From positions 3,076,152 to 3,140,151 of the forward strand of contig NW_002060944.1 in NCBI RefSeq assembly GCF_000150275.1: a stretch of 64,000 bases of DNA, written 5' to 3'. Positions 4,501-62,388 of the stretch are shown in pieces. The stretch's first letter is position 1. Every line of letters starts with the position of its first letter. Under the pieces are notes generated by a model. That model ran no database searches and was not told where the DNA came from. It saw nothing but the letters and a program-made list of their open reading frames with translations. Made by a program: the position numbers and the translations under genes. The DNA is from Trichoplax adhaerens (Eukaryota > Animalia > Placozoa).

Positions 4501-7500
4501 CGAGGCCTCGACTGGTCGAGTGATATTGCAATTGATGATATTAATATACATGAGGGAAGTTGTGGTTAGTATCTATAACACTTACAAATCGTGTAAAACT
4601 GAATGATTTAAATATAATTGATAGAATAATATACTGAATCATTCTCCAGGCGCCCATCCATGTGATCCAAATCCTTGCAAGAATGGTCGTTGTCAGACGC
4701 TTAGCTCTATTAACTATATATGTGATTGCTGGACAGGATATGAAGGGAAACACTGCGAAGCCGGTTAGTATTAAAATGTACGAGCGTCATTTAAAATTCG
4801 AGTATTTAGTAATACCATTTTTGGATGTTACAATTTCATAATCATTTCTCTTATCTCAGCAAAAAGATATAAAGCATGCGAAAGTAATCCTTGCATATCT
4901 GGTACTTGTGTAAATTTGGCTAATGGAAGGCAATATAAATGTCAATGCTCTACTGGCTTTACTGGAAATCAGTGCTCACAAAGTAATGCTCGTACATATA
5001 CAAAATCTTACTAATTTAGAACTCACAGTCAGATAAAGTACAAATTTATCTGCAAAGCTTTAGTTATAGAGGGCTAGTATTTAACAAATCGATACTAGAG
5101 TATGTTAAAAAATCTTCTGCGCTTATTGAAATTCACAAGAGCAACACTTGTCATCGAAATTAAGTTAGTAATTACATAGTATTTGTGAGTTTGTAATTAT
5201 CTATATTACTAATGCTTTAGAGTCTGGTATCATTTATTTGAATAGCTCTTACAAAAGTATGATATTAATCTTTAGGATTTTTTTCATTACGTGATATCTC
5301 TATAACATTGCTATAGAAACCAAAATAATAAGACAATGGATATGCAATCATGAAGATTTTATTTAAGTCGTAGTCAAGCTAGTATTACCGCTATAGTATC
5401 CAGTTAAGAGCAATAAAATAAGCGACATTAAATATTCAGTTACTGTACCGCAACTGCAGTAAAGCTATAGCAAGCGCTGTATGAATAATTTTTCTATCGT
5501 AAACGTTTCAATTACTGAATTATTAATAATCGTTATTTAGAATACATTGAAAGAACCTTGAAGTTAATGCTTATCGGCAACTACAGCTCAGTAAGAAAGG
5601 TTTTGACATTTCTTTTACAGTTTCTAACTGGACGTGCGATTTTAAAAGAGATCTCTGCTCATGGGAGCAAAGTCATTTAGACTCATTAGATTGGAAATTC
5701 GTTAACCATAAAAATCGAGGTGAGTTAAGTCAGATCGAAATTAGATTCTGTATAATACGAGATAATACGAGTAAGTCGCGGACGGGCTATAAAATGACTT
5801 TCAATCTAATACGACTGGCTTAGAATTTGAGGTCGAGATAGAGAAATATTTTTATAAGTATAAAATATATTATACCGATGCAGAAGGTATGATAATATTA
5901 ACTCCCTACCATTTAATAATGTTTAAGAATAGTGTATGGATATTTTACAGAAGAGTGAGATGGTCTTACTCCTGCTGCAGTCTGCGAGTATTATACTAAA
6001 AATGTGATTTTTCTGCTTTTAATGTGCTCTTTGCAGCAAATAGATACTTAAGTTTGCTAAATAGAGATGGCAATAATGGCTTTGGTACTATCAAGAGTCC
6101 ACTTTTGCAAGGCAATGATTATCTGTGCCTTAAAATTTCCTATCTTATTGTCGGTAATACGACATCATTGTCGATAACTACTTCCTTTAATGACAAAATC
6201 TGGTCTAAAGACGGTAGAAGGCTAACTACATGGCGTAAAGCAGCAATTACAATCGATAAATTAGATCGATATACTCCGTTTAGGGTATTACTGCTAACTG
6301 TTTTACATTTCTTAAGTATATTTAAGAATTATCGGAATCTTGAGCTCATTCAGAATTTAAATCGAAAATTTTTTCGCTATAGATTTATATTACCGCATCT
6401 CATCGAGGAGGAAGTGGAGAGATCGCACTTGATGATATTCAACTGGTTCCGGGCAAATGCCGTAAGTGAGACTAACGATATTTTCTCAAATTTCAAGCTC
6501 CGATTACTACCTAAAATCATGAATGACATTAGTTATTTAAGAGAAACACGAAAGTAAATTTAAACTCTGTTAAACCACTAAAGTATAAAAAGTGACCCAC
6601 AATTTTCTATTTTATTATGTTTATTTGGATAAATATAATGACATAGCGGCAATCTGGGATTATGAAGGTAAACTAAGAGCATCAGATTGATAAATAATCT
6701 AATAAATAATAATTACTATAGAAAATGGAATAAGAAGTTAGCTGATTTCCATTTATCGTATGATTGAAACCACTATTAATTTTGAAACTTTATGAATTAT
6801 AAAACTACTTATATATTTATTTCATTGCTAACTTGTCTAATAATAATATTATAATCGATTTCATATACGTACTACGGGAATTTGTAGCTAACTTAGATTG
6901 CAACTTTGAAGACGACTTCTGTACTTGGAATAATGCCTTCTTCGATGATTTTAATTGGAAAAGAAGGACTGGTTCTGTAATAAATACCTCCGCTGAAGAT
7001 ACAAAGAGTAATACATCGCATCCAGGTACCTTAGTTGTATCATCGAAAATTATTTAATTTGATATATGAGTATATTCAAATGTTTAATCTGTAAGTGTTG
7101 AATTCTGTTAAGCTACCCACAAAATTACACATATAAATATTGTTACTGATTATCGTAACCAAAATGAAACTGAAGTCCTTATTTTATTACCAGACTATTA
7201 CGCTTTCATCGATGGTATCACCAATATGGAAACTAAATGTGCAGTATTAGTCAGTCCAGACATGAAAAGTAGCGGTAATCGATTTGAACTTACTTTCTTC
7301 TATTATCTGTATGCCTATGTTGGTGGAACATTATCAATCTCGACGACATACAACGGTGTAATTTGGACTAAAAGTAGTTGTCAAAACTCTCGTTGGTTCA
7401 GTGAAAAAATACTTATTAATGTTCCCAAAGGACTAGAATTTCAAGTAAGCTTATTTCCTCACTGCATTATAAATATACAAGTACAGTGTTAGTATGCCGT

Positions 7501-8819
7501 ATCACAGCGAAAGGTAATGTTTATATCCAGAAGAGCAATTGGAAAATAATATCGTTATGGGATATATCGTTACTAGACTGTTTAAGTACTATACTTTATT
7601 ATTATTGTTATTTTATCGTTAATTATGTAATTTAAATATTATCATATTGCAATTAGTTTTATGATAGTGTTGGTGAGGGTACCTAGTTCATAAAATGTTG
7701 CTGAGAGATTAGTTAAGTATATCTGTACATTCTTATTCAGATCCATATTTCGGCCACTGCGGGCTATACAAACTTAGCTATTGATGATATCGTCTGGAGA
7801 AAAGATCAACGTAAGTACGGTAATGTCATTTATCGTATCCATTCAGTAATTCAACTTTAGATACAAGTAACTAATCTTGATTGATATTTTACTGTAAATC
7901 TGTTTTTCCAAGATCGATTCATTTCTTATGTGTCCATTATAATTAATTACAACCAATAATGTTAGATGCAGAAGAAATTCAACCAATTCAAGCGATACGC
8001 AATCATCCAAGATGTGGCATAACCAACTCTCGTATACCTCGTATTGTCGGCGGCAACACTACTTCTCCTCATAGTGTTCCATGGCAAGCATTATTGAATA
8101 TGTTTCATACATCAGGGGGTATTTTTCGTAAAACAACCTGCGGTGGCTCACTAATTAATGAAAATTGGGTTATTACAGCTAGTCATTGTGTATCAAATAA
8201 GCCGATTCTAGTTACGGTTGAACTTGGACGGCATAATATTACAGCAAAAGAAACCTATACTAAACAAATAAGAACAGCTAAGTCAATCTTTCGACATCCC
8301 ATATCTCAACATAAAGATTCCTATTCAGATATTAAAGATCTGGACGGTGATATTGCTTTAATTAAACTAAGTGCACCCGTAACTATTAATAATTTTGTGC
8401 GTCCAATATGTTTACCAGCAGCTAATGATACATTTAATAAATTTAACTTATGTAAAGTTTCTGGTTGGGGTAGAACAGCTGGCCAACAGAGTCACATCTT
8501 ACGTTATGCCAATCTACCTATCTTAAATCGGAAACTTTGTAATAGCACCTTTTCTTATGATGGTCAAATTACCTCTAACATGCTATGTGCTGGTTATATG
8601 CAAGGCTATACCGGTGCTTGCTTTGGGGATAGCGGCGGTCCAATGTCATGTCGCCATCGTCCAAATGCGGTCCTATCGGGATATTCAAACCGATGGTATT
8701 TAGCTGGTGTTGTTAGTGGTGGACGGAGTTGCGGCCGAAAACATTATCCTAGTGTTTATGCAAACGTGACTGCAGCACCCATTTATAGATGGCTATTAAA
8801 CATATTAGGAAATAATTAA
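1514..8819 (+). CDS. Secreted MAM-MAM-EGF-EGF-MAM-MAM-S1A serine protease (paralog A, intact, 16 exons)
   Basis: Hand-spliced GT-AG exons in continuous frame: 1514-1589 ([26 protein letters not shown], signal-peptide-like), 1875-2045, 2167-2411, 2528-2618 (MAM1: CNFE..CQW..GPSYDHT..IAIDDI..C), 3246-3395, 3550-3803, 4483-4564 (MAM2), 4650-4763 and 4860-4982 (EGF: [23 protein letters not shown]; [23 protein letters not shown]), 5621-5719, 6037-6284, 6383-6461 (MAM3), 6888-7025, 7194-7444, 7741-7810 (MAM4), 7966-8819 (RCG..PR/IVGG, TASHC, DIAL, GDSGGP catalytic triad). Confidence 0.9.
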
Positions 8820-10605
8820 TAAATTGTGATAATGTGTCCGAAAATAAATGTTGATATGTAGACATTTCATTTTCTAAATTTATATTACACATTGTGCTTC
8901 ATCTCTGTTTATTTCCATCCTATAATTGGTAAGAGATAAATGAAAATATTTGTTTCTAATTCATTAATACCAATCGTGACTGCTAGCAATGTCTGATTTC
9001 TTTTCTTGACTACAAATAAATGATAGAAATACCGTAGGAATTTTGTACTGTAAGAGCTAAAGGAACATAATAAAATAATTTCCTTCATCAATTTCACATC
9101 TATCGAAAAAATTTAAAAATTTTTTTAGCTTACATGAAATGCGTTTACGGATCAAGCTTGCGTAAGATTCTATTAGTATTGAAAAATGTTATAGTGCCCT
9201 TATATATTTGTGGCTGGCCAGTGTATAGTCCTTACAAAAATACAAGTACATAATCATAATGCAATAATACGAATAGAATGGAGTTCATTTTCAATCTTTG
9301 TGCTTTACCGTCTGTCTCATTCTATCGAGTTTTTCCTGGTGTAACTAGTAAGATTGCATTCAGCTTTCGTTCCAGAAATGGCATTTGGGGCAATTTTGGA
9401 TCGAATGTATTACTTATTTGTTAGGTGTATAATTGCACTAGAGATTAAAACAAATTCTCATGAACTTCCTTCTTAAATATGAACCGTTAAAATTAAAGTT
9501 GTAATCAAGTATCTATTCCCCTATTTTCGCATCTTTAAGAAAATAGTCAGAGCTGCACCAAATAGCAATGCTTAAATTAGATTGGTTAGTCGATTCCAAA
9601 CCCAAGTTCAGACCCGAGATTTTGCGCGTAATAATTGGATTAATTTTAAGTAATGGCTTTAGTCTGTTGTCACTATTAATACTTTGGTATTCTTAAGAGC
9701 TGTATTAAAATGATGTTAATAGGAGATGATATAGCGTTTGATGAATCTTAAATTAGATATCATTTGGTGTATTTGAGATATTTCAATTTCAATGTTAATT
9801 ACTACGATGTCGAGTAAGATATGAAAATTATATTTACTTCTACTCTATTTATTACAGAATTTCAGGAAGTGGACTGCATAAAATCGACAAATCATAGAAA
9901 TGGACTAGTTTCAATCATAGAATACTCTGAATAAATCATCTTATTTTAAAATTTAAAGAATTTTCTGTGATTATGTGTCTAGAAGTCTCATACTAATTGT
10001 TGGAAGACATATATAGAATTAATCCGCTCGCATATATAGTATTGCACATTACTTGTTTTGGTAGGGTATGCTACCATAGATAATTGTATTTTGTACACAT
10101 GTTAACATATTTACAAATTGTTACTATCAATCCCAGTCGTTTATTAGCCATTTCTTGTAAATAACTGGTCTACTTCATTTGTGCTGCTCATTGCAAGACA
10201 AAACAAACAGAAATAGCTTTAACAATTATGTAGCTATAGCCCTAGGATGCCTAAAATTGACTTAGACATTCTTTAAGATTATCTATTTCTAAGGATTGAT
10301 AGTAAAATTATGATTCACTTATCGTAATTAGTTTATTATCACAAAATATAACAAGTAAGATAAAATAAGGATAAGCTGAGAAAAACTACGTATAATCATA
10401 ATATTTGCAACCTTATACATTTACCGGAATATAATATCATAAAATCTATAGATAATTGAGCGGATACGAATTAGGGATATCCTCTAATTCTATGATATAT
10501 TTTAGTTACAGTAGATAATATCTTAGCATAACATTATTATACTAATAAACAGCACATTATTAATTATAGTACACACTATAGAATGAGCATTATCGTAATC
10601 TTAAC

Positions 10606-28900: not shown

Positions 28901-30540
28901 ACTATCAAGTAATGTGTCAAATATATTTGAAATATATCTATATATGAACAACATAATGCATGAGGACTACTTTCCGTATATATTGCATTAATATGCTTCA
29001 ATCCTGCGCGTATAGTCGTCTTTTTACCTCGCCTCTATTCCAATACAAATTAAACAAAATATCATATATAACATTTTTGGAATTTTTTGCATACTGAATT
29101 ACGTTCATTGCTGCTTTATAAAATTTGGCGGTAATCTGAGTGTTTAGTAGCTCGTAGGAAATACTATCTATTTGACATGATTATTTCCATGGTGCTAATA
29201 AGCGATTAAATTTTCATTCCTATGGCGGAAAAATTTTACGAATTACCCAAGTGATAGATACGTCAGTTCTATTAATTCTATCATTACAAGTTTATAATGA
29301 AGATACAACAGTTATTTTATCGGAGGAAGGGTTTTACTTTTTCTAATGAGAATTTATGATAATATTTTGGTATATCTAGTAAACTTTTGTAGGTACTCAA
29401 TTTTTAATATATATATATATATATAACATAACATAACAATAACATATATATAATTATAACTGTCATTCTGATTGTAGATCTATATCGTGGCCATTCGTGG
29501 CAATACCTGGTCGAGTGATATTGCAATTGACGATATCGATATAAATGAGGGCACTTGTGGTTGGTATCTATAACAATTTGTGTAAAACTGTATGAGTTTA
29601 AAGATGTTTCACTGCATGTCTGATTTTTAAAATCGAATTATTTCCTGCTTACCCATTATAATTAATTATAAGTAATAATACATTAGGTGCAGAACAAATT
29701 CAATCAATTCGATCGATACGCAATTATCCTAGGTGTGGTATAACTAAATCTCGTATACCTCGGATTATCGGTGGTAACACTGCTTCTCCTCATAGTGTTC
29801 CTTGGCAAGCATTATTGAAAGTGTACTATGTATCAGGGGGTAAGGTGCATACAACGAGTTGTGGTGGTTCACTAATTAATGAGAATTGGGTTATTACAGC
29901 AAGTCATTGTATACCAAATAAGCCAATTCGAGTTAAGATTGATTTAGGACGGCATAATCTTCTGACAAAAGAGAGCTATACTAAGCAAATAAGGATTGCT
30001 AAGTCGATCTTTCGGCATCCCATGTATCAGTATAAAAACTCTATTTCAAGTATGAAAGATCTGGATGGTGACATTGCTTTAATTAAACTAAACGCATCCG
30101 TAAATATTAATAATTTTGTGCGTCCAATATGTTTACCGACAGCTAATGATACGTTTAATGAGCTTAACTCATGTAAAGTATCTGGTTGGGGTATGACAGC
30201 TGGCCAACCAAGACATATCTTACGGTATGCTCATGTACCTATCGTGAACCGAAATTTTTGTAATAGCACTTATTCTTATAATGGTCGACTTACTTTTAAC
30301 ATGCTATGTGCTGGTTATATGCAAGGCTATACCAGTACTTGCTATGGTGATAGTGGCAGTCCGCTGTCATGTCGTCATCGTCCAGGTGCAGTCCTATCAG
30401 GATATTCGGATCGATGGTATTTAGCTGGTGTCGTTAGTGGTGGAGTTGGTTGTGCACCAAAATATTATCCTACTGTTTATGCAAGCGTGACTGCAGCACC
30501 CATTTACAGATGGCTATCAAAGACATTAGAAAATAGTTAA
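25901..30540 (+). CDS. Secreted MAM-MAM-S1A serine protease (paralog C, intact short form, 8 exons)
   Basis: Exons 25901-25976, 26277-26447, 26570-26814, 27635-27725, 28363-28512, 28655-28908, 29478-29559 and 29687-30540 splice in frame. Motifs PR/IIGG, TASHC, DIAL and GDSGSP are present. There are no EGF or MAM3/4 exons. Confidence 0.88.
26847..27394 (-). mobile_element. Solo-LTR-like insertion (548 bp) in intron 3 of paralog C
   Basis: TGTCAC...GTAACA termini with a perfect 5-bp TSD ACAAG (26842-26846, 27395-27399). It is absent from the equivalent intron of paralogs B, E and F. Confidence 0.82.
27852..28085. mobile_element. LTR-like fragment in intron 4 of paralog C
   Basis: Begins TGTTACAAG...GACAAGGATAACGTA, similar to the start of the 14687 element (...GACAAGGTAACGTA), and replaces host intron sequence. 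The right boundary is approximate. Confidence 0.4.
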
Positions 30541-30890
30541 TAAATTGTAACAGCATTTCCGAAAATAGATATCAACATGTAGACGTTAAATTATCTAATT
30601 TACTTTCTATATCGTTGTATTGCTGTATGTTTCTATATTATTGCTTGAAAAACGTAGTTAAAAAGATTTACTTCTGATCTGATTATCAATACAAGCGTGA
30701 TAACTAATAATGTCTGATTTTATTTTCGGATTATAATTAATTGCTGCAAAAATCTGAGGAATATTATCCTGTAAGTACTAAAGGAAAACAATAAAATAAT
30801 TTCCTTTATCAATTTCGCATCCCCTGAAAAAAATTTTAAAGCTTTTGACTTACACGAATGCGTGCACAGCAAAAGCTTGTGAAAAGGATT

Positions 30891-31931
30891 CGATTTTGAA
30901 TCGGACGAGTGATACTGTAATTGATGATATTAATATAAATGAGAGTAGTTGTGGTTTGTATTTACAATTTATGTTAAGCTGTAACATAATTTAAAGATAT
31001 TCTACAGCATATCTGATTTCCATAATCGATTTAGGTCTTCTTTATTTATGATAATTAATCATAACTAATAATATATTAGATGCAAAAGAAATTCCATTCA
31101 TTCGGTCTTATGCTATCATCCAAGTTGTGGTATAATTAAGTCTCGTATATCTCGGATTGTCGGCGAGAACACTGCTTCTCCTCATAGTGTCCCATAGCAA
31201 GCATATTTGAAAGCGTATTATATATCAAATGATAAAGTGGATGCAATGACCTGCGGTGGCTCACTAATTAACGGGAATTGGGTTATTACAGCAAGTCACT
31301 GTGTGGCAAATAACCCAATTCTAGTTACGATTGAATTTGGACGACATAATCTTAGAGCATTAGAGGCCTATACTAAGCAAAAGAGGACTGCTAAGCCGAT
31401 CTTTCGACACCCTACATATCAGCATAAAGATTCTATTTCAAGTCTTAAAGATTTGGATGGTGATATTGCTTTAATTAAACTAAATGCACCCGTAGCTATT
31501 GATAGTTTTGTTCGTCCAACATGTTTAACAGCAGCTAATTATTCATTTAATGAACTTAATTTATGTACAATATCTGGTTGGGTAAAGCAGTTGGCCAGCG
31601 GAGATATATCTTACGTTATGCCTATGCACCTATTTTGAATCGGAGACTTTGTAATAGTACTTATTCTTATAATGGTCAAATTACTTCTAACATGCTATGT
31701 GCTGGTTATATGCAAGGCTATACCGATGCTTGCTATGATGATAGTGGTGGTCCATTATCATGTCACAGTCGTTCAGATTCAGTCCTATCGAGATATTCAA
31801 ATCGATGGCATTTAGCTGGTGTCGTTAGTGGTGGACGGGGTTGCGGACAAAGATATTATCCTAGTATTTATGCAAACATGACAGCAGCACCCATTTGCAG
31901 ATGGCTATCAACCATATTAGAAAATAATTAA
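30891..31931 (+). pseudogene. Paralog D: 5'-truncated short-form protease pseudogene
   Basis: Remnant of the MAM2 end plus the protease exon. It reads IVGE instead of IVGG, has a TAG replacing Trp at 31195-31197, a frameshift near 31585 (split ORFs 31207-31638 and 31563-31931), and DDSGGP instead of GDSGGP. Confidence 0.88.
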
Positions 31932-46000: not shown

Positions 46001-48397
46001 AGAATTAAAATGAAATCTTTCGACATAGATTTATATCACAGCATTACGTCGTCGAGGAGACGGAAGGATCGCACTTGATGATGTTCAGCTACTTCCCGGA
46101 AAATGCCGTAAGTGAGGCAAATTTCTTAAATTTTTAGCTTTACTAACCCGCAAGGATCATAACAGTTATAATAAGTACCAGAGTAAATTTAAACTATATC
46201 AAAACTTTAAGGCATAACGTAAAGATTTTATTATTTTCCATTTTACCATATTTCATCGGATAAATATCATGATACAGCGGCTATCTGGGATTATGAAGGT
46301 AAATTAAAAGTAGTAGATAGACAAAATGTTCTAATTAACGATTTCTATTAAAATGAAATGAACGTTAAATGATTTTTATTATCCTATCATAGAAACTATT
46401 TATAGTTTTATAGTTGTATGATTTACAGAATTTGATATTTGTCTCATCACAAATTCGTCTAACAATATACAAACTTCTTCAATTTTATAAATTATCGATA
46501 TCACAGCCAACTTAGATTGCAACTTTCAAGATGACTTCTGTGCTTGGAATAATGCGTTCTTCGATGATTTTGATTGGGGAAGAAGGTCTGGTCCTGTAAC
46601 AACTACATCTATTGGAGCTAAAACGAGTACTAAATTGCGTCCAGGTGCTTAAGTACATCATCAAAAATTAAAATTCGATAAGTATTTATACATTCTAGTT
46701 TATCTTTAAATGTAGAACTATCAAGCACAAGTGATCAATAAAATTCTATATTCAAACATAATTATTAACATAAGTTCCTTATTTCATTAATAGACTATTA
46801 CGCTTTCATCGATGGTATTACCAACATGGAAACTAATCGTGCGGTATTAGTTAGCCCAGACATGAAAAGCAGTGGTAACCGATTTGAACTTACTTTTTCC
46901 TATCATATGTATACCTATGTTGTTGGAACATTATCAATCTCTACAACATATAACGGTGTCATTTGGACTAAAAGTGGCAGTCAAAGCGTTAGTTGGTTGA
47001 GTGAAAAGATACCTATTAACGTTCCTAAAGGACAAGAATATCAAGTAAGCCTATTTCATCACTGCATTGCACATACATATATATCGTATTTCGGTAAATG
47101 TCAATATTTATATAAAATAATTCGAAAATTATATTGTGATGGATATATAGCTACTAGAATATTGGACATCTTCAATTTTTTATTATTGTTATAATTAGCG
47201 TTGATTATGTTATTTAAATGCTATCATATTGCCATCGGATTTGTGCCAGTATTGATGAGCATAGCCATTTCATAAACTATGATGGGGGTTAATTTAAGCC
47301 CATATTTACATCTTTCTATAGATTCATATTTCTGCCACAGCAGGTTATGCCAATTTAGCTATCGATGATATTATCTGGAGAAAAGATCAACGTAAGTACT
47401 TTCCTTTATCGTATCCTTTGAGTAACATATCATTTAGTACAATTCATTCAAACTCGATAAAGGTGTTTTAGTGCAAATCTGATTTTCTATTATCCATTGA
47501 TTTCCTATTTGTCCATTATAATTAATTATATCTAACAATACATTAGGTGCAGAAGAAATTCAATCGATTCGAGCGATACCCAATCATCCAAGATGTGGTA
47601 TAGCTAACTCTATACCTCGGATTGTTGGCGGTAGTGTTGCTTCTCCTCATAGCGTTCCATGGCAAGCGTTATTGACTGTGCATACTACGATAGGGAATCT
47701 TCGGCGTAGAAGTACTTGTGGTGGCTCATTAATTAATGAAAACTGGCTCATTACAGCAAGTCATTGTGTATCGAATAAACCATTTCTAGTTGATATTGAA
47801 TTTGGACGGCATAATCTTTTAGCAGAAGAGAACTATACTAAGCAAACAAGGATCGCTAAGTCTATCTTTCTACATCCCATATTTCAAGATAAATATTCCT
47901 ATTTGCATATTAAAGATATGGATGCTGATATTGCTTTAATTAAGCTTAATGCACCAGTAGCTATTAATAATTTCGTGCGGCCAATATGTTTTCCAGCAGC
48001 TAATGATACATTTAATGAATTTAACTCATGCAAAATCTCTGGTTGGGGTAGAACAGCTGGCCAGCCGAGTCATATCTTACGTTATGCCGATGTCCCTATC
48101 TTGAATCAGAAACTTTGTAATAGTACCCATTCTTATAATGGTCAAATAACTTCTAACATGTTATGTGCTGGTTATATGCAAGGCTACACAGATGCTTGCT
48201 ATGGTGATAGTGGTGGTCCACTATCATGTAAGCATCGTCCAGATGCAGTCCCATCTGCGTATTCAAATCGATGGTATTTAGCTGGTGTCATTAGTGGTGG
48301 ACAGGGTTGCGGACAAAAATATTACCCTGGTATTTATACAAGCGTAACAACAATACCCATTTACAAATGGTTATCAAAAATATTAGAAAATAACTAA
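40010..48397 (+). CDS. Secreted MAM-MAM-EGF-EGF-MAM-MAM-trypsin-like serine protease (paralog F, intact, 16 exons)
   Basis: Exons 40010-40085, 41611-41781, 41925-42169, 42454-42544, 43091-43240, 43396-43649, 44297-44378, 44460-44573, 44667-44789, 45316-45414, 45690-45934, 46029-46107, 46507-46644, 46794-47044, 47322-47391 and 47547-48397. Motifs PR/IVGG, TASHC, DIAL and DACYGDSGGP (Asp189) are present. Confidence 0.9.
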
Positions 48398-51300
48398 TAA
48401 ACTGTGTCAATGTTTCCAAAGTAAATGTTAGTATCTAGCTGTTAGATTTTTTAATTTTATTCTATATATATTGTTTTATCGCTGTATGTTTTCTACTATT
48501 TTTAGACATTTTACTTTCAGTTTAGCTATTATAAGTTCATTTATTCTAAACTTCAGTAAATTAGACGATATGGCTACTGTAACATATCGAACCGCTTAAA
48601 TGCTACATTAGAAAAAAACATAAATAGGAAACAATGGCCAACTGAAATATTAATTATCCGATAAAGCTGGCCTAAGTTAACATTTTGCAACAAAAATTTT
48701 TGTTGTAATTTTCAATAATTTTATATCTTGACTTCAATTCACAGGTATGTGATATCTTAATATGCGATAAAAATATATCAGTTTTTGGCGGCCGTTAGTT
48801 AATGATTCGATTGTACAACACCATAAATTGCCACTCAAACAAGATAAACGCCTATTCATGATAATGATACTTTTCCCGAAAGCGATATCATTACTTATAA
48901 AGATCGGTATCTCAATATTTTATAAAGTAGTATCAATGCTTGCATCCTATAGCTGGAGAGAGGTAAAATTAAAAAATTGATTCCTAATCCATAAATACAA
49001 AGGTGATGGCTAGTAGCGTCTGATTTTAATTCTAGGCTAAAATTAGAACCGAAAATATTTTATGAATAGTATCATGTAGGAGCTAAAGAAACGCAATAAA
49101 ATAATTTTCCCCTCAATTTCACATTGAGCGAAAAATTAAAGCCTTTAGCTTACATGGAATATACTTATGGCATAAACTTACATAATTGATCATCTTAATA
49201 CCATAAAAATATTAACACAACCCATTTGAATATACGTTCATATATATGACTACTTAGTGAACAAACTTGGATATGCTACTAAAATACGGTAAATTTTAAA
49301 TTTCTTGCAAGTTATGAAATTAATATCATTAGTAGACACATGAAAGGAAGTATATTATACCTTTAATGCTGCTCTACGAATCTGTCTTGATTGTATAATT
49401 TGTAGTTAGAAATTTCCAATTTGAGCTTATGTTGATGCATTTCTAGTATTATTCACGAACATTTAATAAAGATGAAGTATAGATATCATTATTATACCAA
49501 TTTTTTATGAACTCTTGATTCTGTAGTTACGAATCTTCATGTGGTAAAGTAACAATGAGTGCATGTAGTAAAATAGCTTTCCGCCATTTTGCTTCTATGT
49601 ATTTTAATCATGAGGCATAAATCCAGACTCATATGAATGCTAAAATAATAAATTATTATGGCGCAGCTAATGCTAAGAAAAATTATATAGTCTAGACGTA
49701 CTATACTATTGGCGTGCATACAGATGATCGATAATATTAATTCGATCAGTATTTGAAAATGCACAGTTCTAGAGTTTTAAGGCTTCTACTGAAATTATTG
49801 AGAATCATCTACATTATTAATCCTAAAGCTATTGTATTAATGAATCTACGAAAATCTGGAATGGACGAAGAAGCTTATTATATTTTGTTATTTCTATCGC
49901 TATCATGTGAACCCATTCTATCGCTAGAATATCTTAACAATCAATGTAATATCTTGCCACATGCAAATATTAAATGAGATCATGTTTGATTTAAATATAA
50001 TCCTCTAATGATACAGCACTTAATAAATTAATCATCGTTTATCCAACTTGTACTAATTCAAGTTTACGCCGGATGTAAATTATGCAGCATCTCGCAAACA
50101 GATATACTGTTTTTATCCTAACTCAAGATTTTATTGATTGTGTATCACAATTATCCTCTTATGAATAAGCCCACATATTAATTTTAATGAATACTGTAAT
50201 ATTTTCGCATCATTAAAACATTCTATAAAAAATATCCGGTATGTGCTAAAAATATGCTTTAGGAGATAAATTTTATTCGCCTACAATTAAGAATGCAAAA
50301 CAACATAATATTTGTTTTGGAATAATCAGTCACCTTCACAAGAGGACCATTCTGGTTAAATAACATAACCGCATATTGGCATTTCCTATTCTAATATTTT
50401 GATTATATAATTATTAGGCTTTGCTATATTTAGCTAACTATAGTTATAATTTTAAAAATATTCGATTGCTTTTGTTATTTCTACTTTTCTTTTATACTAT
50501 ATTTAATAATGAAAAAATGCGGAACAGTATAACATCACTTTGATCGTGAACTTTAGGATATACAAGTTGTGAATGCTTTATTATGGTAGATCATAAATCC
50601 ATGAGTATGAATAGGGCAATGAATAAGATTTACTGTATAATGTTTTCAAGTGTGGTAGCAAGAAGCGAACCGCAATTTATGAAAGCCAAGAACTTATTAA
50701 AAGCTCACCTTAGACAGTTCTTGTAATCTAATCAGCAGACAGGAAATTGAAGAACAGGGCAATTGTATACTGGTAATGCCTAAAAATATAGGGTGCTTTA
50801 CCCTATCTTATGTGCTAGTTTTTAAATGTAAGGTTCTGATCTGATTGTTGATGAACCAATCTAAAAATATCCGATATTTTACTATGATGAATGAAATACT
50901 CATGATTTATAAAGTTATGCATGGCTTAATACCAAAAGTAAGTAATATAAAAGTAACGTACCGGTACCATATGAACAGCTGTAATAGTTATTATATTTCG
51001 ACGAATAAAATATTTACAGTTGGTGGTTTAAACTATAGCATAGATATATTTATTCATTTATTTATTTGTAAAAGACTAGTTTATAATTACTTATTTAATA
51101 CGATATTAAGTTTTGGCTATAAATAGGTTAAATCGGATCTGTAAAATATCAATCAACTTTTTAGTCAAAAATAACGCTACCGGTATTGTCTAAACACCAA
51201 TACTTAATATTTGCAGCTGGCAGTTATATTGAAGAAAGGCCACTGCCCATAAAACTAGGAAAATTAGTACATAAGATCGACTTACCTATGTGCACAGAAT

Positions 51301-54300
51301 ATTCAATTTTCTTTACTAGTTTATTTCATCTATCAAGTTCTATTTGCGACCAGCCAAAGCACAATAACAATTTCATTTATTATGAGATCAAGTGAGGGCA
51401 AATGGTATACGCGTTATACTCGTATGATCATTTAAGAATTGATCCAACCGGAATTAAATATTTTAAAGAGTCCTTGAATCTATTTTATTGGCTTCAGTTC
51501 ATATTTATTCCTATTTCATAAACAGCTATTAAATTTTAGATAAACATTTTAAGATTCCTGATTAATACGATCTTCTATACGATATCAATTGATCAAAGTA
51601 TCATAATAAAAATCTTGTATTCTTGTACGTATCATAACATTTTCGTATCATGTGAGGATTATAATAGATTGGTGCTAACGAATTTCTCGAACTTTTAGGG
51701 CCATTTCAGTGAAAACAAGCTTAGCTATAACAAGATATATGGCATTAAAAAAAAATTTGTTAATGCAAGTCTGTAAGATAAAATTCATAGTTTCATTCAT
51801 CATATCCTGTGTCCAACAATTTCTTTTTGATTGGATAGCGATGCACTAGCCTCTAGGATTGTAATTATTTTTATTATTTGATATTCAATAGTAAATTTTA
51901 TAAAGAGCTAATCGTTTTTTTTTTAAATAAAAAACACTAATTTTATTTCCATATATTGGAGCATTCTTGTTCATTTTACGCTTTATTAGCATCGCGATTT
52001 ATTAGTATTAGCAAACAAATAACTAATTTAAGATTACAACCCAATAATAGCTGACGACGTTAATACCATACGCAACTGTAATTAGCTTTTGTACTTTATT
52101 ACAATAATCATTACTTATGACTAACTGATAGTTATTTTTAGATTAAATTTGTAAAAGAATATCTTAAAATTCATGTTCGTAATTCAACTACTTACTGAAA
52201 ATTCCTCTATTTCGTGGTCAACAATTGCATTTTTAAATAATTATGAATGCTTAGTTTTGTTAACTGATTGCGATAATGTTTACAGGTACTATACTCATTA
52301 GTAACAGTAGATTAATCATGGAAAATATGAACTTTGTTATCTCTGAATATAGAAATAGTTTAAATTTAAGTATTTGATTATAATTAAATTAGTTATAGCC
52401 TTTATGTGATTGACGACAAGTCAAAGGGTAATTTTAATTATAAAATAGATGCTACGTCATCATATTGCAACCATAATTTCATCACAGATTTCTCTTGGTT
52501 TATTTCCAAATTATGATATTCTAGCTACATTTAGTGCCGATAAAGTTGACTTCAAAGTCAGAATACTTGTAAAATAACAAATAATTAGAAGTTCATGTAC
52601 ATTATAGCCAAGCAAACCGTATAAATTTGTAAGTTTTATTTATATTCACCTTTTTTCGCAGCAGTCCCTAAAAGAAATACAACGTTATAATTTATTTAAC
52701 TATAGACTACTTTATTAAATTAAAATTTTTTTCATATAAAGTTCGACGTAGACCGGGTTTATAGATCTTATTACGTCATTAACTCTCAAATTCTGCATTA
52801 TTTGAAATACACGTATACATAATTCATGATAATAAGTCAACAAACAGATTAAAATAAACCCATGTGAAGTTGTAAACATACCATAAACAGTTTCAGCTTA
52901 ATCAATAATATAACTTGATTGATTAGATTAGAATAGCTTCGCATTATAACGTGCGGAAAATAATTTTGTATCAATTTTAACATATTTTCTTCATTCTCAT
53001 CACGAAAAGTTAACTCAATCTAATAGCATATTATAGACATAGTTTTAAAAAAATAAACCAATTAATCGCGAGCAATGGCATGAAATTCGACTAAAAAGAA
53101 ACTAAAGGATATATAATTGTGTTTATTAGAATACAAAATTTATTACTCGAAATTCTTATTAAATAAACGTAGATAGATCTGATCAATGCTAGACAATCGT
53201 ATAATTTTTTACGGCAAAATAATAACTGCACGGTATGCTAAGTCAAGCAGGTAATACAATAATAAAAATTAAATTCTTTATTTAGTTACGCCATTATTTC
53301 AGGTTTATTTATAATTTAAGATTTTATTATTAACAAAATAAGAAGTTTCTTGGGTATCAACATGCTGCAATCTATAGATTTCAGTAGTTTATAATCTATT
53401 ATTTCATAGAGTAACAGAATATTACATGATATTGACCTTGAATTAAGATGCTGCAAGTAATAGTCCGGTCACTGGAAAACGATAGATTGATATGATGATA
53501 TCGATAGTCACTGCAATTCTAAATAACCTCTTTCATATTTTATAGCACATATGTATTACTGTGACTTAAAAAACCTAGAAAAAGCTATTATTATTAACTT
53601 ACTGATTATATTTAAAATCTTTCGTTTAATAATTGAAGATCAATTTGGCTTAATATAATCTCGAAGATGATCTGAAAACACCTGTCAATAAGCTCTTGGA
53701 TATGGACGCTTGCAATAATGAAGAGAAGTGGGTGTTTAAAAGAATCTAAATTTTAGTATTTAACTATTTTTACAGATTGATGAATGAAAGAAAATTAAAA
53801 TTGCAGACGTCATAAGTACTCAAACTGCTCTATAACATTTATAATTAATAGGTATTATTACTCGTCATTATTGATTCTACAAAACAGAATTATGCTAATA
53901 ATTTATATTTAGACGTAAAAACTATCATCGTTAACATCACCAATAAGCAGGATTATTGTGAATGCGTAAAATTTATTTCATCACATTATCACCCACTCAA
54001 AATAATTTTGGATGATGTGGGTAGGTTTCAATTTTGTGAATACTGTGAGATATTGTGTAGATAATAATGAAATAGAGAAATAAAATATTCTATCGGCTAC
54101 TATCTTGAATCTTCTTATTAGTTGATATTTAATTTTGTTTATTTCAACCCACGGCTTCCGATGGACTGTTCTATTTCACTTGATATTAATTATAAGGCTG
54201 TTTTTTATCCTAGTTGTCAAAGCTTAAACATGATAAACGAATAAGAGATTGATTACTAGTTGATATTTGGAAATTAAGGTGTGTTAATGTTATTGACGAG

Positions 54301-54604
54301 AAAAAAAATGCCCGCATTGTCTATTTTGTATTCTAGTAACTAGCGATCGGTACTCTGGTGTCGAATTCTAACAATCACAATTAATCTACTCTGGTTAAAA
54401 CTTAGTAATATAATGTTAATCCGCCAATTGAGCTTTAGTTACTCACCTGATTAAATAAAGTTGGACAAATAATTAAGGTAAGACAATATCGATATTATTG
54501 GCTTCGATAATCGTTATATCAACATGTTTGTCTTTGTAAACTTGACATTATGGTAGTTTGAATAAAATTAAAAGAGGCATTTATTTATGATGCTCTAACA
54601 AGGC

Positions 54605-54612
54605 TATAAATA
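54605..54612 (+). promoter_or_regulatory. TATA box of the small secreted-peptide gene
   Basis: CTATAAATAG is followed by a plausible non-coding exon ending at donor G/GTAAG (intron 54719-55291, acceptor TTTTTTAG), 29 nt before the ATG at 55321. Confidence 0.6.
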
Positions 54613-55320
54613 GTCCTACCAGTCGTTCCTTTCTCTATTCACACACTTGCAGAACATCATTTGGTTAAGTCAAATTATCAGCTAACTTACTCTGGTCCAA
54701 ATTGAAATACATAACTGGGTAAGAAATGTAATTATTCAGCTAAACTATTGCTATATCTTTTAATCATCCTTTATAGAGTTAGCTTCATGAATTCACAGCA
54801 GTACCAACTCTGTTTCGCTTTCCTTCACCACTTTATCATAACTAGTATTTGCTTTACGTTAATTTGTATTTGTGAAGCCGTCAAATACTTTATACTTGAT
54901 TGAATTTTTCCCTCTTTCGACACATTAGGGTTGTACAATCTAGCGATATTTTGTGCGTAATTATTTTCTGTTCTGAAATCGTAGTAAGATATTGAAAAAG
55001 TTGTAAGTTACAATAATTGCAGCTGATAACTGACATTGGTAGATCTTTAGCCATTGTACGTTTGCGGTTAGATAAGAGAATATTATTGCGATATTAGCTA
55101 GAACTACAGTGCCAGTACTTGATTTCATGACATCGTTGAACGGTACGGCCTTAGTCGATACGCAATGATTATTTTTTCTGTCTAGATATTGATAATTTGA
55201 TCAATTCATACTTGTATATCGTATACGATTGTTCTAAAATATTGGTAAATCTTATCCTAATTATTCTTACTTATTATAAACTATTTTTTAGAATCGAATT
55301 ATCTAGCCTCACGCATAAAT

Positions 55321-55578
55321 ATGAATTCAAATTTTAGAATAACTTGGATGGCTTTATTTATTTTCGCCTTTATGGTAACCATGAACGCTGCTATACCATT
55401 ATCGTCTAACTCTCAAGCTCATCGACAGTTAATTAAAGATAATTTAATCCATCCCATGGATGAATCAAACCAACATCTTCATCATGAGATCATTCATAAA
55501 TTGCACAAAGTATTACATAACGAATTAGCTAAAACAAAAAAAGAAGATAGTAGCGATCCTGATATTTGGTTTGGTTAA
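55321..55578 (+). CDS. Small secreted precursor (85 aa), candidate amidated neuropeptide (..DIWF-amide)
   Basis: Hydrophobic signal peptide (MNSNFRITWMALFIFAFMVTMNA), His-rich spacer, dibasic KK, acidic EDSSDP and terminal WF-G-stop. There is an upstream TATA and 5'UTR intron, and AATAAA at 55654-55659. Confidence 0.75.
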   Translation: MNSNFRITWMALFIFAFMVTMNAAIPLSSNSQAHRQLIKDNLIHPMDESNQHLHHEIIHKLHKVLHNELAKTKKEDSSDPDIWFG

Positions 55579-57354
55579 ACTAATATGGAAGAATATACCG
55601 GTACTCAATACATTCCTTAATTGAGAAACTGAATTCTACGAGTCCTAAACTGCAATAAATTTATGAGCTCGTAAGGATATATGATAGCCGATTATTTTCA
55701 AATTTTTCACCTCTAGCTATCGAAAGTGAGCAACGTAGAGTATGATAAATAATTAATTAGTATGAATCTGCCTTTAAAATTGTAAATTTGGTTAACGTCT
55801 TGTATAACACACCTTATTAACCTTATTAGAGATAACTTAGCACTGTTATTATTTGTTCAGTTCAATCTTTCCGGTATTGATGAGAGACTTAAGACATGAA
55901 AAGTCTTTTAGAAATGTAATTAAAAATTCTGACATCATTAACTGGCATATCAACTCAGTATAAAGTTTTTGAATACTATACGCTGTACATGCTTTATATT
56001 GTATTACCAGGTGGCCAGTGCAAAAACCATAATGCGAGTGGAACAATCGATCATTCTTTAATATCGTAGAGAATTATGCTTGCAGATACTAATCTAAAAA
56101 CTATCATGGCATTTAGCAATTCTATTTGAGGTCAAACTATTCTATAATAAAATGAAAGTGTGGCATGAAAATATTTTATATAGCGATATTGATGGATTAT
56201 TGAACGATTACATTATTAGGAATTACATGATATATTTTATTTTAATGAAGCGAATGTTAAAATAAAAATAGCAGAAATCCTCATCCATATTACAATAAAA
56301 AGCAAATCTTCTAAAGTCATATTTATCATCTGTTCTATGTTAATGTGAAATTGATCACGGAAGCTCATGAAGTAATTCAACTCATTGCTTCTGTTAATTG
56401 CGATGAATTAGGCAATGAATTACATATAATAATAGGGCCATCATCAACGATAGTTCCATGATTTCAGATATGGTATTAAATTTACAGTTGATATATATTT
56501 AATTAAAATAAAGAAATAAGGAAACTATTGACATCATTAGTTCGTTTCTTCCTCTCTCCTTTCAAGAGAGAAAAAATCCTGTAGCAATAATCTATTGCCG
56601 TAATTTAATGCCTATAATGTCCCTGCTTCACGTACATCTACACCATCTCGAGGACTGTGTCTAGTATATTTTACTCAACTAAATGTAGTGAAAGTTAATT
56701 TTGCGATAGTGCTAGACAAGGAAAGACTTCCTTTTATCATCGGTACATAATTCTTTTTATTTTTCTGTACATATACAATATAGATAGATAGTCATAGATT
56801 ACGATAGGAGAAAAGAGATTTGCAAGATTAGAAATGACATTAGCTAACCAGCATTGCTAGTTGTATGTCAACATTTAGCCGTAATTTTCCTTTATTATGT
56901 CATTTATTTAGATATTAAAACATTTAAAAATGTCACCATTTAGAACCGATATGAACAATAGGATTGTTAAAAGACATTTCTTGTAAGAAGTTTGCACTTT
57001 TTAAAATAGAATATCAACTTGAAAGGCATATTACAATGATATTTTCCGAAGTGTTGATACGTTAAAATTAGCAGCAAATAATAATACTTTTAATTAAAAT
57101 CATGGTTAATAGTTGTCGACAATGGTGAGAAAAACAGACACTGATCATTGCAGTAGTACAGCAAAATAGAATATTTTTCCATGAATGAGAAGAATTTAAT
57201 GAGGGAAAGGACTTCATTTCCAAGTTATTGCATATAATTGTTAAGTTAATTGAACCTGATAGTAATCAATCAGTAGAATACCAGCAAAGCTGTAGATTAG
57301 ACGTTTTGTATATTTGTTTCTTACATGGACACGAGTATTTCACGGCATTGTTTA

Positions 57355-60300: not shown

Positions 60301-62388
60301 CAAGATATGACGATTATGTAATTATGATACGATTCAACAATATTGTACTTACTGTTCATTTTCAGATGCACCAGTACGACGAGCTACTTCTCTACGAACT
60401 AAATATCCATCAAATGAACGTTATCCAGTTTAGTAAAGTTGCCCCAAAATTCAATGACAATAGAACGACAACACGTAGATGAAGCGATTAAAATGTTGTC
60501 TACTCTATTGTTTTTATATTACGAATGCTGTTACAAACAGTACTACTCTATTTACATGTAAAGTATCAATAATAAGATTAATAATTATATAATCGGAGAA
60601 TCCAATCTGTGGGTATTACTACTCTTGACTGTGGTGACATGTTCTATAAATATGCAATCGGTATTGAGTAGTTTGCTTGACAAATACTGCTGTTGGTTCT
60701 ATACCGTTGGATAGACATGTATCGTTATAATCGTATGCTGGAGGTCAGATGTAGGATATAAGAGAAATTTTTTCTACTTCATAAAAATATGATGATGAGA
60801 TAGATGTTGTACCGTTTCCAAGGAATAGTAAAATAAAATTATTGTGAACTAGTTGCTCAATACAGTTCATTGCATCAGTAGAATGATTCAAGGATGACGC
60901 ATTAAATGATTGATTTATAGAGGACCGTATGCATCATGATTTTTCTACACCGCATAATGTGCTTTATGCTATGATCACTGGCTATAGGCGACACGGATTC
61001 CATTCTATAACGCTATTTGGAAATGGCAATATTGTAAAATGATACCAATTGCAACTGCCTATCCTACATTCAATTCAATATTACTCAAATTGGATAACGA
61101 ACGCGTTCAGGCAATTAGTAGACATACAAGTAGTATTACGTTAAGTGAAGAGAATACGACCCTATGACAAAGGTCGACAAGACAGAATACGATGTGCAAC
61201 TGGATGTTGTGTTTTGATTACAGCACCTGGTCTCCTTTTAGGTTTGAAATTAGTTGATAAATTTAACGTCGGTTTTGATTGATTTAAGTTATGGCCTAGT
61301 AAATGATTGTAATTCTTCTTGGGTTCATTCTCTTGTTTTAAATTTAATCCTAATGCGCTCATTCCGTCACGTATATTGCCAGTTGGTGACGAAGACATAG
61401 CGCTTTTTCTCCTCTTGGGCCTTGATGTTGCGTGGACTTTGTTAGAAAAAGAGCGTCTGAATGGGATTTGTTCTGTCCGAGTGGTGAAAGGATGTTGGTC
61501 AACACTTTCCAATTGGTTTGCCAGCTAGGGTCCAGCTGGAGTAGTGTGTCACGACAGTGCAATACTGTACAGTGTACAGTACGGCCACGGTGGAGTACTA
61601 TCCGTACAGTACAGTACTGTACGTCAGCGCTTTCTCATACGGGCACCACTAACCATACAGTGTACAGTGTACAGTACGGCTTATTGGAGGTTTTCTTTGT
61701 ACTGTAGACGAGTACTGTACTGTACACTGTACAGTACACTCTGCAAGTGTGCTACAGCTACACCTGTCGAAGGTTTGGTAGATTGGCTACTGTACACTGT
61801 ACAGTACTGTACTGTACAAGTTTTGATCATATTATCTGTTTTTTTAAAATCTAGATTGAATTTCTACACCCTTGTACTGTAGACTCTGCAAGTGTGCTAC
61901 AGTGCGACAGTACCATGGTACTGTAGATTGGCTACTGTAGACTCTGAAAGTGTGCTACAGTACGACAGGACCATAGTACTGTAGATTGGCTAGTGTACTC
62001 TGTAAGTGTCCTACTGTACAGTACGACAGGACCATGGTACTGTAGATTGGCTACTGTAGATTCTGAAAGTGTGCTACAGCACGACAGGACAATGGTACTT
62101 CTACAGGACCATGGTACTGTAGGTTGGCTACTGTACTGTACTGTACTCCATGCTACAGTCACTACAGTGCATTGCGTACAGTACTGAGTACTGTACGCAA
62201 CTACCCAATTTACTGTAGACCATACGGGTAGAACAAAGCTTGTTGGAATCATTGCTTACCCAACTCTCAAAGGAGATGTTAACGATTGCACACTGATCAT
62301 ATTGAACAATTTTGTCAATTGACGCACTTTTAGTACTCGCGCAAGACGCATTGACGCAACGTCCAACACGTATTCTAAATTCGGCCAT
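57355..62388 (-). CDS. MAP2K7: Dual-specificity MAP kinase kinase 7 (MKK7/JNKK2 orthologue)
   Basis: Kinase exons (- strand): 59730-59670 (LDQQLEEIKKETGLLTIDGK), 59522-59409 (GSGTCGTV..IAVK), 59248-59129 (KRVLMDL..KSHDCPYIV), 58873-58766, 58666-58615 (HGVIHR), 58464-58337 (DVKPSNILL..CDFGISGRLVDSKARTRGKGCAAYM), 58179-58102, 58015-57873, 57683-57638 and 57468-57355 (DVASWF..stop). These closely match MKK7 motifs, including the SKAxT activation loop. The N-terminal exons 60398-60353, 61524-61227 and 62388-62260 are frame-compatible but less certain (alternative ATG at 61398). Confidence 0.9.
60200..60282. repeat. Short direct repeat (~33 bp, period 50) in a MAP2K7 intron
   Basis: ATTAATCTAACCTATCGAGTCG(C/T)ACCTATTTTT occurs twice. 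Confidence 0.85.
61560..62220. repeat. TACAGT/ACTGTA-rich low-complexity tract containing a ~58-61-bp minisatellite
   Basis: The unit GTACTGTAGATTGGCTACTGTAGACTCTGAAAGTGTGCTACAGTACGACAGGACCAT recurs at ~61918, 61976 and 62037, with partial copies either side. Confidence 0.9.

Follow-up and report, generated by a model that had tools for sequence, protein, structure and literature searches.

An unannotated two-exon gene of Trichoplax adhaerens encoding a candidate precursor of a placozoan-specific WF-amide peptide

Placozoans coordinate their behaviour without neurons, by means of secreted peptides alone, and the catalogue of these peptides amounts to the parts list of their entire signalling system. 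The question raised by the present locus is whether an 85-codon open reading frame (ORF) on the forward strand of Trichoplax adhaerens DNA, at positions 55321–55578 of the 64,000-nt stretch that was analysed (hereafter, the window), adds a part to that list. A first-pass annotation of the window had proposed an amidated neuropeptide precursor at this place, and the ORF is present as it was described, opening with an ATG and closing with the tail ...KTKK-EDSSDPDIWFG, directly followed by a stop codon. The locus is transcribed and spliced, its conservation is of the coding type, the end of its ORF is conserved, and it is absent from annotations and peptide catalogues; on balance, we consider it fairly probable that the ORF encodes the precursor of a secreted, placozoan-specific signalling peptide with a C-terminal WF-amide.

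The gene model draws on RNA contigs of four public runs (X1, X3, X6, and X7) that were aligned to positions 54000–56500 of the window. Transcription of the gene is documented by X3, X6, and X7, three runs each from a different study, whose spliced contigs contain the joint 54717>55291 and thereby delimit a 573-nt GT..AG intron (54718–55290, +) in the 5′ untranslated region (UTR), where an intron had been predicted from the DNA. Exon 1 (54630–54717, +) is non-coding 5′UTR devoid of ATG and is represented from 54630 in X3, from 54670 in X6, and from 54651 in X7. Exon 2 (55291–56249, +) carries a 30-nt leader, the whole coding sequence (CDS; 55321–55578, +; 85 residues and the stop), and a 3′UTR of about 670 nt, and it is covered colinearly by contigs of X3 and X6, in pieces by X7, and by an X1 contig extending over 54705–56249. 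The longest contig, which belongs to X3, measures 1047 nt and joins 54630–54717 to 55291–56249. The TATA box that had been claimed for the gene, TATAAATA, was found at 54605–54612 (+), 25 nt upstream of the first base of this contig, the start of the transcript being taken here from contig ends, which cannot fix it exactly. No ATG precedes 55321 in the exon model, and in the ORF listing for the two joined exons the 85-codon frame is the longest, followed by one of 32 codons; the CDS occurs as a single copy in the genome. Splicing around the stop codon was also looked for, and no joint of this kind occurs in the RNA contigs of the four runs. An AATAAA had been reported as part of the gene and does lie at 55654–55659 (+), but it is not the main 3′ end, because the contigs of all four runs read through it and continue to 56249; a further AATAAA is situated just beyond that position, past the contig ends.

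Some contigs depart from this model. The unspliced contig of X1 and the low-depth intron contigs of X3 and X6 are read here as pre-mRNA or DNA. An alternative upstream non-coding exon (54436–54475, +), joined to 54651, appears in one contig of depth 3 from X7, the run labelled as a second organism (organism B), and on the strength of this one low-depth contig it is graded as minor or strain-specific. Three variants were present in the contigs: 55394 T>A, which changes Ile25 to Lys and occurs under two organism labels (X3 and X7); a synonymous change at 55521; and one at 55602, in the UTR. A scan for sigma-70 promoters and terminators, a model that is not applicable to a eukaryote, stayed at shuffle level. 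T. adhaerens has at this locus a genuine gene of two exons, expressed and present in one copy, that is not contained in the public protein sets searched.

Its absence from those sets was examined at several levels, with ORF queries taken from exon 2, which holds the CDS in full. The exact 85-residue sequence had no match in a collection of about 15 billion proteins, and a word-indexed protein search with the ORF returned nothing, not even the ORF itself. The control, a trypsin exon at 7959–8816 of the same window, retrieved its own gene call on a 9.74-Mb contig together with TRIADDRAFT_53233, which is one example of the T. adhaerens proteins matched by neighbouring genes in the window; since the control found its own gene call, the collection holds the genes of this scaffold, and the ORF is therefore unannotated there. 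The assembly around the window comprises 105.6 Mb in 1,414 contigs. The novelty claimed for the precursor stood up in the placozoan peptide catalogues examined, namely Table S5 of Najle et al. 2023 (PMC10580291) and the prepropeptide list of Mayorova et al., among whose entries the precursor does not figure. The peptide sheets of Table S5, which report mass spectrometry of Trichoplax sp. H2 and Hoilungia H13, contain no fragment of the precursor, a weak negative because spectra can be assigned only to proteins that the searched database includes, and the ORF was probably not among them. In full-text literature searches, neither the tail motifs nor a placozoan WF-amide came up in any paper. Given the absence of the ORF from protein sets, the gene models on which the single-cell atlases and the mass-spectrometry searches were built probably lack the gene as well.

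A relative was found in environmental DNA. An exhaustive HMMER search of 1.84 billion representatives yielded one match, a protein of 100 residues (P0001; E 7e-12), and detected no cnidarian, ctenophore, or bilaterian relatives; BLASTP aligned the ORF to P0001 at 34% identity (E 2e-23). P0001 is encoded without interruption by one ORF of a 1,420-bp metagenomic contig (L002; ENA ERZ23499115 scaffold_56186), and as a query in the word-indexed search it retrieved only itself. Against the Trichoplax genome, P0001 matches this locus only and is a reciprocal best hit with the ORF, and from their sequences the two are treated here as orthologues. A DNA search with L002 against the same genome had no match, the divergence between the two being too great at the DNA level. 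The closest non-self relative of the trypsin exon at 7959–8816, at 68% identity, comes from the same metagenome assembly as P0001, and since the two share one assembly, the sample very probably contains an uncharacterised, divergent placozoan, from which P0001 is likely to stem; an identical trypsin protein is also present in a second ENA assembly, ERZ27263980. The protein identity of this presumed placozoan to Trichoplax is 68% in the trypsin and 34–40% in the peptide precursor.

Searches by pattern added no further members. A scan of JGI metagenomes with the conserved signal-peptide patterns produced 127 pattern matches and 0 relatives, and a scan with a degenerate DNA pattern of the conserved tail produced 12 matches that were all rejected as chance, their open frames measuring 8–83 codons, none having a signal-peptide-like start, and most lying in DNA of higher GC content than placozoan loci. 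In the 105.6-Mb Trichoplax genome, the DNA pattern for D-P-x-x-W-F-G occurs only twice, a rarity that, like the ORF end kept by P0001, speaks against a chance feature; the second occurrence (L018) is not at the end of an ORF and was discarded as a paralogue, its 30-codon open frame running on past the Gly.

The orthologue also bears on whether the transcript is translated at all. An untranslated RNA, with the ORF as a chance feature of AT-rich sequence, would accord with the absence of the ORF from all public protein sets searched, with a 3′UTR that is long relative to the CDS, and with a GC content of the CDS (0.31) that is the same as that of the window. We nevertheless hold this to be highly improbable: a genome whose copy of the neighbouring trypsin domain (one exon, 286 residues) is only 68% identical has preserved the frame of the orthologous ORF intact, at comparable length and with start context and end unchanged; dN/dS stays below 1, synonymous sites of the pro-region being saturated; and the ORF begins at the first ATG of the transcript.

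The conservation argument draws on two sequences, the ORF and P0001, and the way in which their identity is distributed fits a prohormone. The signal region is 50% identical, with I-T-W and I-F-A-F-M invariant; the pro-region is 32% identical, with a dN/dS of 0.31 at saturated synonymous sites; and the linker is 30% identical, contains indels, and is where the 15-residue difference in length is placed. Overall, dN/dS is about 0.54. The last seven residues, D-P-(D/E)-(I/L)-W-F-G (55555–55575, +), are 71% identical (five of seven, the Asp/Glu and Ile/Leu exchanges being conservative), are followed directly by the same stop, and are the best conserved stretch at the DNA level as well. Both proteins accordingly end in W-F-G-stop and keep the C-terminal Gly, and the first-pass expectation of a conserved WFG-stop behind a diverging spacer is matched exactly in the only homologue found (71% against 30–32%). 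With conservation starting at Asp79, the likeliest active core would be (D)P(D/E)(I/L)WF-amide.

The upstream boundary of the peptide fared differently. In Trichoplax, Lys73-Lys74 (55537–55542, +) is a candidate prohormone-convertase site, and loss of this pair in homologues had been named in advance as evidence against a precursor; P0001 has no dibasic pair and carries a single Lys there. In an ungapped, C-terminus-anchored comparison, each of the two proteins has a Lys exactly 12 residues before its end. The lone Lys of P0001 is not accompanied by the usual upstream basic residue, and a K-x4-R site lies 15 residues further upstream of it, use of which would give a 25-residue amidated peptide.

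At the other end of the protein, the layout suggests a signal peptide, predicted heuristically to span residues 1–24 (55321–55392, +): a basic residue at position 6 is followed by the most hydrophobic 13-residue stretch (7–19; mean Kyte-Doolittle 2.4) and then by Ala23 and Ala24, and cleavage would probably fall after Ala24. At this junction, Trichoplax has A-A followed by I/K-P and P0001 has ...TIA followed by K-P. Cleavage after residue 24, leaving an X-Pro N-terminus, is supported because the Ile25Lys variant, which alters the predicted junction, recreates the Ala then Lys-Pro arrangement of P0001; for the same reason, Lys being the residue in the divergent orthologue, the reference Ile25 may be the derived allele. 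The same segment could instead be an uncleaved signal anchor, in which case the ORF would encode a small type II membrane or non-processed protein with its acidic-aromatic tail serving as an interaction motif at the cell surface or in the lumen. The long hydrophobic core (13 residues, mean Kyte-Doolittle 2.4–2.7), its standing as the second-best conserved part of the protein (50%), and the Asn at −3, which in Trichoplax is not ideal for cleavage after Ala24, would suit such an anchor. Small residues before the conserved X-Pro junction in both orthologues are, however, typical of cleaved signal peptides, and an aromatic pair, a Gly, and the stop in direct succession make up the classic layout for amidation; we judge a membrane anchor improbable.

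Between the signal peptide and the Lys pair lies the pro-region (residues 25–72; 55393–55536, +), which AlphaFold2 and the hydrophobic moment predict to be an amphipathic helix with a histidine stripe. The AlphaFold2 model, used for secondary structure only and of low confidence (mean pLDDT 63), has a helix at residues 30–75 and a coil at 76–85, and in each orthologue the helical hydrophobic moment peaks in the segment that begins at residue 40. The stripe (55474–55518) comprises His 52, 55, 59, 62, and 66, spaced 3-4-3-4 on the predicted helix. These features raise the possibility that the pro-region of about 50 residues is itself the working part of a small secreted helical protein, in which the WFG tail would do no more than stabilise the C-terminus, possibly in amidated form, and the His-striped helix of Trichoplax could respond to pH or metals, act as an antimicrobial, or serve in granule packing. 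Purifying selection on the pro-region (dN/dS 0.31), the one long predicted helix, and the shared position of the hydrophobic-moment maximum are in keeping with this, as are the expression in Trichoplax of arminin-like antimicrobial pre-pro-peptides with a C-terminal Gly (PMC11452194) and the lack of any WF-amide peptide in the mass-spectrometry tables of PMC10580291. Yet it is the tail and not the helix that is best conserved (71% against 32% identity), and only His44 and His59, among eight His in the Trichoplax protein, have counterparts in P0001. At four of the five stripe positions, P0001 has Gln, Gly, Gln, and Gln, and since it keeps only His59, the stripe is lineage-specific and stands outside the conserved function. 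The near-neutral pro-region and the pI of 4.6 of the mature P0001 protein are, moreover, unlike cationic antimicrobial peptides, and the charge polarity is opposite to that of arminins. We regard a working helix as unlikely.

Membership of the arminin-like group itself was considered and rejected. The arminin-like pre-pro-peptides of Trichoplax and Hydra are, like the predicted product of the ORF, secreted, and they share with it a C-terminal Gly thought to be amidated and processing motifs at acidic residues (PMC11452194). They are described in the same source as proteins of 150–250 residues with an acidic N-terminal part and a basic aliphatic C-terminal part, whereas the ORF has 85 residues, a near-neutral N-terminal part and pro-region, and a strongly acidic C-terminal tail (pI ~4).

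If the ORF is the precursor of an amidated peptide, as we favour, its maturation can be outlined from the parts described above. The N-terminal 24 residues would target the product to the endoplasmic reticulum and be removed after Ala24, as layout and conservation indicate, and the helical pro-region of about 50 residues would carry the precursor into dense-core granules. A prohormone convertase would cut after Lys73-Lys74, releasing the predicted peptide unit of 11 residues (75–85; 55543–55575, +), which consists of the acidic spacer ED-SS, the core, and the C-terminal Gly and which falls in the coil of the AlphaFold2 model. By established enzymology, peptidylglycine alpha-amidating monooxygenase (PAM) would turn the terminal Gly into a Phe-amide, and no carboxypeptidase step would be needed because Gly is the last residue before the stop. 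The ED-SS spacer might then be trimmed, as in known placozoan and cnidarian peptides, to leave (D)P(D/E)(I/L)WF-amide, the boundary being suggested by where conservation begins, and by analogy the product would act in a paracrine manner on a G protein-coupled receptor (GPCR) or a DEG/ENaC-type channel. Placozoan peptidergic cells express the convertase, carboxypeptidases, PAM, and glutaminyl cyclase (PMC10580291), and N-terminal-side processing at acidic residues has been described for Cnidaria and Placozoa (PMC9545775; PMC11452194). Known placozoan peptides with N-terminal ED or DD before the core (mass-spectrometry forms of H2NP003, 012, 033, and 024; PMC10580291) show the same order of basic site, ED, and core as the tail of the ORF. 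The strong acidity of the predicted peptide (pI about 4) and the missing Lys pair of P0001 count against this reading.

Compared with the known amidated precursors of placozoans (SIFGamide, FFNPamide, and PRWamide/RWamide; Nikitin 2015, Varoqueaux 2018, Najle 2023), the ORF has in common a predicted signal peptide, the lack of a Pfam domain (none was found in either the ORF protein or P0001), a candidate basic cleavage site with an acidic (ED) spacer behind it, and a Gly that would donate the amide; like them, it is confined to Placozoa and evolves rapidly except in the predicted mature peptide. Word-indexed and HMMER searches detected no sequence similarity between the ORF and these precursors, and several differences set it apart. 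The known precursors hold many tandem copies of their peptide (e.g., 14 copies of PRWamide, PMC9545775), whereas the ORF holds one, at the C-terminus; their Gly is followed by basic residues, whereas that of the ORF is followed by the stop; the tail of the ORF, unlike theirs, has no N-terminal Gln for pyroglutamate formation; and its Trp-Phe core end is found in no placozoan peptide of the PMC10580291 listing. The ORF is best filed as a new placozoan-restricted amidated peptide precursor that is unusual in carrying a single copy at its very C-terminal end.

That architecture recalls the prohormones of other animals in which one peptide sits at the C-terminus, such as pigment-dispersing hormone (PDH), DH31, and gastrin/CCK, as well as precursors of sea anemones, with which the ORF shares a size of 80–120 residues and the predicted succession of signal peptide, spacer, and one peptide. 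The ORF has no HMMER or Pfam match to these bilaterian and cnidarian families, and the motifs that define them (e.g., the sulfated Tyr and W-M-D-F-amide of CCK) are absent from it. Among the language-model look-alikes of both proteins in the ESM Atlas, the named families include PDH, DH31, NPF, and urotensin 2B, and those of the Trichoplax protein also include gastrin/CCK, NPFF, and spexin. The top matches of both proteins are unnamed bacterial clusters, and the named ones all score below 0.9 (0.80–0.88) with low counts of shared features; these prohormone look-alikes are a lead only. Gastrin/CCK membership (PF00918) was rejected, the ORF having no Pfam match, an ESM Atlas score of only 0.84, and no Tyr in its tail.

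Another comparison is with the Trichoplax endomorphin-like precursor (TaELP), which contains QDYPFFGN/S repeats (Senatore 2017, PMC5612019). In both TaELP and the ORF, the Gly comes after a stretch with one acidic residue, one Pro, and two aromatic residues, and the pharmacologically active analogues are aromatic-Phe-amides that include YPWF-amide, the WF-amide end of which is also the predicted end of the ORF peptide. Asn or Ser comes after the Gly of TaELP and makes its amidation doubtful, whereas the Gly of the ORF, being terminal, could be used by PAM directly. Three repeats with Y-P-F-F in TaELP stand against one copy with P-D-I-W-F in the ORF, and no homology between them is detectable. 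Membership of the TaELP family, which is defined by Y-P-F-F-G repeats between dibasic sites and by precursor homology, was rejected on the single P-D-I-W-F-G core and on the finding that P0001, the only relative retrieved, is accompanied by no TaELP-like protein.

The resemblance to endomorphins touches on a gap in Trichoplax pharmacology. YPWF-amide and YPFF-amide arrest ciliary gliding at 100–200 nM (PMC5612019, PMC6737977, PMC11452194), and endomorphin-1 (YPWF-amide) at 100 nM stopped gliding in 3/3 animals (Senatore et al., PMC5612019). The native, non-amidated product of TaELP is weak (PMC5612019), and anti-YPFF-amide serum labels the granules of rim mucocytes, not the cells that express TaELP (PMC6737977, PMC11452194). 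A native WF-amide would fit this gap, because TaELP (QDYPFFGN), the only known candidate, is not obviously amidated, is weak, and is expressed elsewhere than the serum stains. We nonetheless consider it improbable that the endomorphin-like pharmacology and immunoreactivity go back to the predicted (D)PDIWF-amide as the native agonist still missing, the analogy consisting of a resemblance of two residues and the amide. Were it true, the gene would encode a peptide that triggers feeding pauses and that was missed for want of annotation, and the locus bears in any case on the question of which native peptide the gliding-stopping endomorphins mimic; if the link fails, the gene would still be a useful, ordinary addition to a known class. 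As a precursor, it would add to the placozoan catalogue a predicted C-terminal Trp-Phe-amide peptide, a type not listed for Placozoa, and would mean that this catalogue has a gap of technical origin, since repeat-based predictors overlook a small precursor with one gene copy and one peptide.

Other features of the window lie on both sides of the gene. Downstream, a tandem repeat at 61875–62118 has a 58/119-nt unit in 3.8 and 1.9 copies with 83–85% matches, and in the surrounding region (61.1–63.2 kb) ORFs of the two strands overlap and V-Q-Y/T-V-Q motifs recur; this sequence is probably repeat-derived and not coding. Upstream, three long exons encode trypsin-type serine protease domains (PF00089, E 1e-53 to 6e-62) at 7959–8816, 29815–30537, and 47672–48394, within regions 5900–8900, 29600–31700, and 46800–48400 of the window, and a weak match to a MAM domain is present at 6024–6554; together, these suggest that MAM/trypsin genes of one family are arranged in tandem upstream of the peptide gene.
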